DNA from: Malacoraja senta
Lineage: Eukaryota
Direction: 5' to 3'
Length of the DNA: 64,000 bases
NCBI GenBank assembly: GCA_038087875.1
Contig: CM075989.1
Coordinates: forward strand, 15,128,001 to 15,192,000
In this document: positions 47,201-50,200 of the stretch, in pieces
Position numbering within the stretch: position 1 is the first letter of the stretch
Layout: each line of letters opens with the position of its first letter
The notes under the pieces: generated by a model
Databases searched by the model: none
Seen by the model: the letters and a program-made list of their open reading frames with translations, nothing else
Told to the model about the DNA's origin: nothing
Program-made: the position numbers and the translations under genes

Positions 47201-50200
47201 TAAAGATTTCTGATAATAAAATTAATAGCTTTTAACATTTTAATTTGTTTCCCTTATTCCAGTTGCTAATAAATCAGGAAAACCAAGTCAAACTCTTTTT
47301 TTTTATAACAGTTGTTTATTTTAATATTTAAAAACTTACTTGTAATTATATTCCTCAATATTTATTATAGTCTACAAAATAGATTAGAAATATATGTTAC
47401 TATGCGGCTGATTAAGCTGTTGGAATAAAGCTCAAAGCAGATTTTCTAACCCTAGCCCAACATAAAATGTAATAAAAATCATACTGATTGTTTATCTGCA
47501 TTATAATTTTGATGAATGATATAATAAAGCTGGTGCTCCTGCAGTAAAGCTAGCTTTCAACCTGGGTAGAACTACTTAATCAGTATTATTGCTTTATAAC
47601 TGTACAGCAGAGAAATAGACTGTTTGACCCAAAGGATATATTTGGAATTGAACTTCTCACTCTGTTAATTCTGCTAACCCAATGTATTTCTCATTCCTTA
47701 CTCCCTCATATATATCTAGCTTCCTCTTAAATGCCTCATCTACTTTTTTTAAATGGTAAGTGCCACATGCTAAACACTACATAAAGTATTATTTCCCAAA
47801 TTCCCTTTTGGATTAATTGTGATGGTCTCTCATTTATGACCCCCAAGCTCCATACTGTTCTTGCTCTCGTAGTAAATACCCTCCTATCAAACCCTTTCAA
47901 CGAGTTTTAATGGGATGTTTATCTTCTATTTTCCAGAAGTTATACAGCACATCCCTTTAAACCGATTGTTTATGGTTATTTTAGACTGATAACAATTTGC
48001 ACATTTCAAATGTAGATAATACCTGGAGCCAGGCCAGAGCTACATGCGCACAGTAAACTTGAAGTAACTTGCCATTTAAACAGATGAAAATGATCAAGCT
48101 ACCAGATTTCTAAACTGCTACTTACAGCTGCATCATTTGTTAAAGGAAACCAATCATGCAGTAGTTTTGATACAATTACTTCAACATGTTAATTTACACA
48201 CAGTTCACGTTGTGATGGACTGCAGAGTCCAAGCGAAGAACTTGGTCCCGTTTTCTCTTTTGTCTACTCCCATGTAATTTGAGCAAACAACATATTCATC
48301 TATTGGTGGAGAATGAACAAGTAGACATTTTCTTCCACCATTATTGCTTCCAGAACTGTCTGCTGCCAAAAATAAGTACTTTTCTAAATTTATCAAATCT
48401 ATTTTCAGGCAACGTCTCAGGCTGAAAGACCACTCAGACTTCCCATCTGAAATAGTTTCTCTTTCAACCTGCAGAGCAAGGATAAGATTAAGAAACGTAG
48501 CAGTGTGAATTTTCTGCTACATATATCAACGCCAGACTGTGCTTCAAACTAGTATCCTGTTGAAAATTGGTCAGGGTTCATCAATTCAAGAGCAATGTCA
48601 AAAGATATAGAGCAAAATAAATAATTAACACAAACTGTTTTAAAACTCAAGTTTTTAATGAGCAGTGCGCAAAAGGTTAAGTTATTCACTTGTTGATCCT
48701 ACGAATATAATAACATGATAAATATAGGTTGCTAAAATTAAGCTTATGAGCTACTATTCCAACTTGTCTGGAACCAAGTAATTTGTACTTGTTAAACAAA
48801 AATAATTAAATGGTGTACCTCTTTTCTATTTGACTGTTGTTACTCAGCATCTGTTTATAACAAAATTATTGATTCCTCTTTGAAGTTTAATTGACGCGAG
48901 CATTTGTTGTCGCTTATTTTCTATAAGTAGTTACTATTTATAAACATATAGTTCCTTGAAAAGCTATATAAAGTGTAAACGAATATGATCCATGTTGGCA
49001 TTACCTTTTGTTTCCATTGCTGAGACCAGAAGGCAACTGAAGGTAGAGGTAGAGTTTTTCTGGATCTGTAAACTTCATCACTTCTTGCTAAAAGCAAAAA
49101 AATAAAACCGAGTTGGAAGTACAAATGGCTTTTAGAAAATAAGTGGCAGACATGTGAAGTGCAAAGTAAATCCTACACTTCCGAGTTAAATGTTACATCA
49201 AATCAGTGTCAACCAATGGAAAGCATTAGACAAAAGATGATATGCCTCTCCACAAAACAGTGCATTCCATACGATAAAATTCCATCCCCCAATACAGTGT
49301 TTCTTTTGCCAAACATCATAAATCTGTGTGTTATGGTTACCATTTGTTAATTAAACTTAAAATGATTTCCCTCCATCAACCGTCAAAATGCTATGTAATT
49401 TTGACACTTTTCCCTTTTGAGGGTTTAGTTTTAGTGATAGTGATGAAACAGGCCCTTTGGACAATGCTTCCTCGCCGACCATTGATCACCCATTCACATT
49501 TGTTCTATGTTATCCCACTTTTACATCCACTCCCTTCACACTAGGGGCAATTTATTGAGGCCAATTAACGCAATCTGGAAAGAATATGGGAAACTAAAAT
49601 ATTCCAGTTGGGGATTGTAGATTGGCTATTGCATGCTAGCCAATTAGAGCGTTTGTTAGTAGTAGCCCCGCCTGGTACATGCTTTATAATATTAGGAACT
49701 CGCCTACGTCAGGCAGTAGATGTAGCAGCTTGGACGTGTAATGTACTGCATATCCAATACTGTAAGAGTTTATTAAAGATGTGTTGTATCTTTAAATGTG
49801 TATGAGTCCGGTAATTACATGGTGTCAGAAGTGGGATTCGAACCCACGCCTCCAATTGTAAACTACCTGGGCAAATTTATTCCCAACCTCAGCGACCTAT
49901 CGGCCCCCCTGCGCCAACTGACACACAAGGACACGGCATGGTCCTGGTACCCGCAGCACCAAAGGGTTTTTGACACTCTCAATCTACAATTGGCTAGCGC
50001 TCCGACAGTCATATTTCGACCTTAAATTACCGGTCACCATCACACGCGATGCGTCCCAATACGGGCTAGGCACAGCGTTCCTACAGACCACCATCGACGG
50101 CGACGTAAAGCCAGTCTCATATGCATCCCGTACACTGACTGGTACCGAACAACGTTATACCCAGATTGAAAAGGAACTGCTTGCAGTGGTTTTCGCCTGT

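Follow-up and report, generated by a model that had tools for sequence, protein, structure and literature searches.

A skate Ty3/gypsy element with a tRNA-derived stretch at the edge of its internal deletion

Introduction

In the normal course of LTR-element replication, plus-strand strong-stop DNA copies the LTR together with the first 18 nt of the attached tRNA primer and halts before the methylated A58. The m1A58 modification is needed for this stop, which was abolished in vitro upon loss of m1A58, and tRNA position 54 has been proposed as a second stop (PMC8599865). Bypass of m1A by reverse transcriptase (RT) often, but not always, leaves misincorporations (PMC4787781), and human cytoplasmic tRNA-Leu(CAA) is reported to be fully m1A58-modified (PMC5499545).

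Products in which tRNA sequence has become part of an integrated genome are described for HIV-1. One provirus and 43 GenBank sequences from nine studies carry 7-54 nt of tRNA-Lys3 at a deletion junction, and the inserts in these 44 defective proviruses were read as the outcome of deferred second-strand transfer; position 58 of the tRNA was changed in five of the 44 inserts and unchanged in the remaining 39 (PMC12657518).

The element described here is a remnant of a Ty3/gypsy retrotransposon in the genome of the skate Malacoraja senta. It lies in a stretch of 64,000 nt (assembly GCA_038087875.1, contig CM075989.1, positions 15,128,001-15,192,000), which is called the window below and from the first letter of which all positions are counted.

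The skate element resembles the HIV-1 proviruses (PMC12657518) in that the 5' LTR and the primer-binding site (PBS) are intact and are followed by a tRNA copy that continues in register past position 58, in that the insert (35 nt in the skate, within the 7-54 nt of the proviruses) borders an extensive internal deletion on its 5' side, and in that position 58 is unchanged, as in most of the viral inserts (39/44). It differs in its biological setting: the proviruses are somatic lentiviral copies in the T cells of patients and were primed by tRNA-Lys3, whereas the skate element is a germline-fixed Ty3/gypsy copy of a cartilaginous fish with a Leu-type primer and an LTR divergence of 3.4%. TRMT6 mutant cells and in vitro strong-stop assays (PMC8599865) offer a further comparison, because there, too, the plus strand enters the tRNA if the methylation of A58 is missing, and strand transfer is then impaired. 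In contrast to that system, the synthesis that would have given rise to the skate element did not halt at position 54 either but went beyond the entire T stem, and the methylation state of its primer is not readable from one faithfully copied base. Ordinary internally deleted Ty3/gypsy copies likewise have LTRs, a target-site duplication, a PBS, a polypurine tract and a partial pol and lack gag, but they carry a PBS of at most 18 nt and some leader, and no uninterrupted tRNA copy running up to the breakpoint.

Results

Boundaries and LTRs of the element

A repeat search and the reading of positions 48600-52100 delimited an LTR element of 2,306 bp at 49616-51921. It is bounded by two direct repeats of 204 bp on the plus strand, the 5' LTR at 49616-49819 and the 3' LTR at 51718-51921, both of the form TG..CA, and the same 5 bp, GGGAT, are found on both flanks (49611-49615 on the left and 51922-51926 on the right). 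The two LTRs are identical at 197 of 204 positions, and the seven differences correspond to a divergence of 3.4%; outside this pair, no further copy of the 204-bp LTR was found in the 64-kb window. On the plus strand, a polypurine tract recognized by sequence reading, AAGAAGAGA (51709-51717), abuts the 3' LTR, and a tRNA-complementary PBS, which starts with TGG at position 49820, abuts the 5' LTR. Direct TG..CA repeats with a target duplication in the range of 4-6 bp, a PBS and a polypurine tract beside the respective LTRs, and a pol region in the order RT, RNase H (PF17917/PF17919) and integrase (PF17921, then PF00665) with gypsy-type RT_RNaseH and Integrase_H2C2 domains place the element in the Ty3/gypsy group. 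As the correct ends had been retained, integrase inserted the product with a 5-bp duplication, which shows that integration was normal.

Several additional properties of the element could be read from the DNA. A TATA-like motif, TTTATAAT, is located at about 49684 in the 5' LTR, and the putative polyadenylation signal reads ATTAAA in the 5' LTR (49773) and AATAAA in the 3' LTR (51875), which is one of the seven LTR differences. The interior (49857-51717) has a GC content of 52% and a CpG observed/expected ratio of 0.91, compared with 40% and 0.44 for the window as a whole, so CpG is hardly depleted in the interior despite the LTR divergence of 3.4%.

The tRNA-derived stretch

A string of 35 nt at 49820-49854 begins directly after the terminal CA of the 5' LTR. 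It occurs once in the window, and zero occurrences were expected in 100 shuffles even when three mismatches were allowed. Read on the minus strand, the string has the anatomy of a tRNA 3' end: the terminal CCA and the discriminator A are preceded by an acceptor strand of 7 nt, which follows a T arm and 7 nt on the far side of it. Folding showed the T arm to be complete, its stem having 5 bp and its loop 7 nt, and the minus strand matched the tRNA-like T arm of Rfam clan CL00001 with an E value of 0.0028. No tRNA genes were found in the window by ARAGORN.

When the register is counted from the TGG that directly follows the LTR, the string consists of two parts, both given on the plus strand. 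The part at 49820-49837 is a canonical 18-nt PBS, complementary to tRNA positions 59-76 including CCA, and the part at 49838-49854 comprises 17 extra nt that complete the T-arm hairpin: position 58 and what remains of the T loop, then the T-stem strand on the 5' side, and lastly 7 nt past the stem. The full LTR and the 18-nt PBS are thus followed, free of gaps, by tRNA sequence past position 58. This position, which is base 19 when the tRNA is counted from its 3' terminus, is an A, and it has been copied faithfully as a T at 49838; the other 16 extra nt come after it. The stretch is putatively assigned to a tRNA-Leu(CAA), as the acceptor, the T arm and the discriminator A agree with the vertebrate sequence of this tRNA. 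Both the length of 35 nt and the assignment to Leu(CAA) are provisional in that they depend on this vertebrate sequence and not on that of the host, and a few more nucleotides may belong to the copy if the variable loop of the host tRNA differs from it.

The junction with pol

Downstream of the tRNA-derived stretch, the sequence resumes in pol on the same strand. The segment at 49858-50016 (plus strand) was identified by BLASTP and tblastn as a remnant of the RT thumb/connection segment, with the Pfam domains of a relative serving as landmarks. The first retained pol residue, a V encoded from 49858, corresponds to residue 701 of this relative (P0012), a gag-pol protein of 1,359 aa, and the alignment spans residues 701-753. 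According to Pfam, RVT_1 occupies residues 510-665 of P0012 and RT_RNaseH_2 starts at residue 730. Since residue 701 lies between the end of the former (35 aa past it) and the start of the latter (30 aa ahead of it), the junction falls into the thumb/connection region of RT.

The end of the tRNA-derived stretch and the restart of pol are only 0-3 nt apart. Between them lies the triplet ATT (49855-49857, plus strand), which is in frame with pol as Ile and is of ambiguous origin. All five relatives that cover this site have Met (FLGM-V/A-NYLGKF), compared with I-V-NYLGKF in the window, and the triplet could be a pol codon with one change, a piece of the variable loop of the host tRNA, or filler. 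The tRNA-derived stretch therefore ends at the deletion junction, and its partner there is a downstream part of the element that has the same orientation and continues collinearly to the polypurine tract. An open, stop-free frame of 75 codons (49798-50025) runs from the end of the LTR through the tRNA copy into pol, probably because the phase of the junction happens to allow it.

Retained and missing parts of pol

From residue 701 to residue 1,350 of P0012, pol was found by tblastn to be collinear with this relative, interrupted by frame changes at about 50010, at 50385-50431 and at about 51180; the relatives that are collinear with the retained pol have lengths of 1,213-1,359 aa. All remaining parts are on the plus strand and were located by tblastn, the first two also by their Pfam domains. 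The RNase H domain is reached via the frameshift near 50010 and extends over 50009-50431 (PF17917, E value 5.6e-30). The zinc-binding and core domains of integrase follow via the second frameshift at 50385-51194 (PF17921, 1.4e-14; PF00665, 1.9e-10), and the C-terminal part of integrase is found at 51178-51537, downstream of both the third frame change and a gap in which some 67 aa of P0012 are missing. In this gap, at about 51180, the tblastn alignment proceeds from residue 1143 of P0012 to residues 1210-1350.

In the element, neither a leader nor gag, protease or the RT core was found, and nothing matched P0012 upstream of residue 701. As the genes of an autonomous element are missing, the copy is a non-autonomous deletion derivative of a Ty3/gypsy element (Metaviridae). 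A first-pass annotation of this DNA had reported intact LTRs with a 5-bp target-site duplication, a 35-nt stretch directly 3' of the 5' LTR that includes CCA, the acceptor strand and the whole T arm, a resumption of pol in the late RT/connection region, and the loss of gag, protease and the RT core; this anatomy was recovered in full by the analyses described above.

Relatives and other repeats

The nearest proteins in libraries that hardly cover this genome were 77% identical for the junction piece, 74-81% identical for the RNase H piece, and at best 75% identical for the integrase piece. In metagenome and viral contigs, no match was obtained with patterns taken from either side of the tRNA-derived stretch, 20 nt of the LTR and 23 nt of pol. 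Protein-guided scans of these contigs retrieved one distant relative (L001) with 46% identity and no LTR in reach, and a second match (L002) that was at chance level.

The dominant repeat of the window is a short interspersed sequence with a conserved core of about 85 nt, which resembles the common elasmobranch SINE. At least 12 direct copies are distributed over 1641-63300 (for example, at 3060-3144, 16488-16572 and 63216-63300), in addition to many more inverted copies, and at 59258-59389 two units of the core, 66 nt each and 83% alike, are arranged in tandem head to tail. Furthermore, the window contains an inverted repeat of 332 nt (15773-16104 and 16245-16576), the arms of which are 93% complementary and 140 nt apart, and a smaller pair of similar kind (28986-29118 and 29306-29438, 95%). 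These pairs may represent head-to-head insertions of repeats or a foldback element.

Discussion

The combination of an intact LTR and PBS, an in-register tRNA copy that ends at the edge of the deletion and a collinear pol fits a read-through of the tRNA primer. In our view, the element is probably an internally deleted Ty3/gypsy copy that was produced by an error of reverse transcription, in which a read-through into the tRNA was followed by an illegitimate second-strand transfer.

Under this model, plus-strand synthesis continued for at least 17 nt beyond the regular stop, as the sequence shows: it went past A58, traversed the loop and the stem of the T arm and reached the variable region, the tRNA being of the Leu type. 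The resulting 3' tail would not have been able to pair with the leader of the element itself, and minus-strand DNA from the part of pol that encodes the RT thumb/connection appears to have become its partner. Two routes to this joining can be envisaged. The tail might have invaded a completed minus strand, which would have generated a large heteroduplex, and its subsequent resolution has to be assumed. Alternatively, the growing minus strand, having been extended about 1.9 kb past the polypurine tract and having its end in pol, might have switched onto the tail, which would have yielded a clean duplex. Both routes lead to the same product, and they are indistinguishable by sequence. The product has the order LTR, PBS, 17 nt of tRNA, 3' half of pol, polypurine tract and LTR, and it is devoid of the leader, gag, protease and the RT core. 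Since then the copy has decayed, as is seen from the seven LTR differences, the three frame changes and the additional gap in integrase.

The first-pass annotation had gone beyond the anatomy and had proposed that RT read through a hypomodified tRNA primer and that, by an aberrant transfer, the tRNA capture and the deletion may have arisen in one event. This reading is supported in part by the present analysis: the anatomy fits, the end of the tRNA sequence is the edge of the deletion, and the class of events has been published for HIV-1 (PMC12657518); the event may have created the current insertion or an ancestor of it. The proposal of a hypomodified primer is to be taken more cautiously, as the faithful T at 49838 is compatible with an A58 that lacked the methyl group but is no proof of it, and position 58 is likewise unchanged in 39 of the 44 HIV-1 inserts (PMC12657518). 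It should also be noted that human tRNA-Leu(CAA) is reported to be fully m1A58-modified (PMC5499545), and thus read-through on a Leu(CAA) primer would not be expected to be easy.

The error need not have occurred in the generation of the copy that is seen today. It might have been a single ancestral read-through deletion, and the present copy might be a daughter of a gag-less, non-autonomous subfamily that was mobilised in trans; the extended PBS would have been kept because, being part of the RNA template, it would pass into the minus strand with every cycle. Such a descent would be in line with the fact that non-autonomous LTR derivatives are common, and parts of the stretch do occur in runs of seven organisms. 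However, the copy lacks the leader and the gag region, in which packaging signals are usually located, and no sibling copies were seen, the closest proteins being 74-81% identical in a database that hardly covers this genome. We therefore regard an inherited junction as unlikely. It would be quite improbable, in turn, that the long tRNA complement is a trait of the leader shared by the whole family and that everything from the leader through the RT core was lost in an ordinary deletion, which took place after integration or resulted from template switching of the minus strand and began by coincidence at the last base of the tRNA match. Some LTR elements do pair with their primer tRNA outside the PBS as well, but in Ty1 and Ty3 this extra complementarity is distributed over separated boxes, unlike the contiguous and gap-free 35-nt copy of the skate element, which has the signature of a read-through; moreover, the deletion would need to have its breakpoint exactly at the limit of the tRNA homology. 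When the two cases are considered jointly, i.e. that all full-length members share the 35 nt or, as a variant, that a deleted subfamily has been amplified, the overall expectation is that this is rather unlikely.

An origin of the stretch other than from the primer has a very slight probability. In that case, a fragment of a tRNA gene or of a tRNA-derived SINE, or a sequence of chance resemblance, would have become trapped through recombination at the boundary of the LTR and pol, and SINE copies are indeed abundant in the window. Yet the complement of CCA is placed exactly at the edge of the LTR and the stretch has the antisense orientation of a PBS, and in eukaryotes CCA is added post-transcriptionally and is absent from tRNA genes; a tRNA gene or a SINE fragment as the source was rejected on account of the position of the CCA complement. 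Chance resemblance of the 35-nt string was rejected in view of the expectation of zero occurrences in the shuffles, and the GGGAT duplication encloses the whole unit. Read-through of the primer followed by illegitimate strand transfer hence remains the explanation that we favour.

As judged from the comparison with the proviruses, the event belongs to a class that is already known in HIV-1, and the skate element is not a new kind but adds an example from a germline Ty3/gypsy element of a cartilaginous fish. An error documented in HIV-1 proviruses and in assays in vitro would thus also yield heritable, integrated copies of LTR retrotransposons in the germline of a vertebrate. Given a germline copy with a read-through junction, read-through past m1A58 with illegitimate second-strand transfer would be one route to gag-less derivatives, although a single copy provides an added example and not a principle. 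It is conceivable, albeit doubtful, that the tRNA-Leu-primed Ty3/gypsy lineage of the skate genome is unusually prone to read-through and that a sizeable class of its defective copies has been made in this way. If this were true, the set of junctions would constitute a genome-wide fossil record of the stops of RT on germline tRNA, from which the m1A58 state and the next blocking modifications could be read in an early-branching vertebrate.
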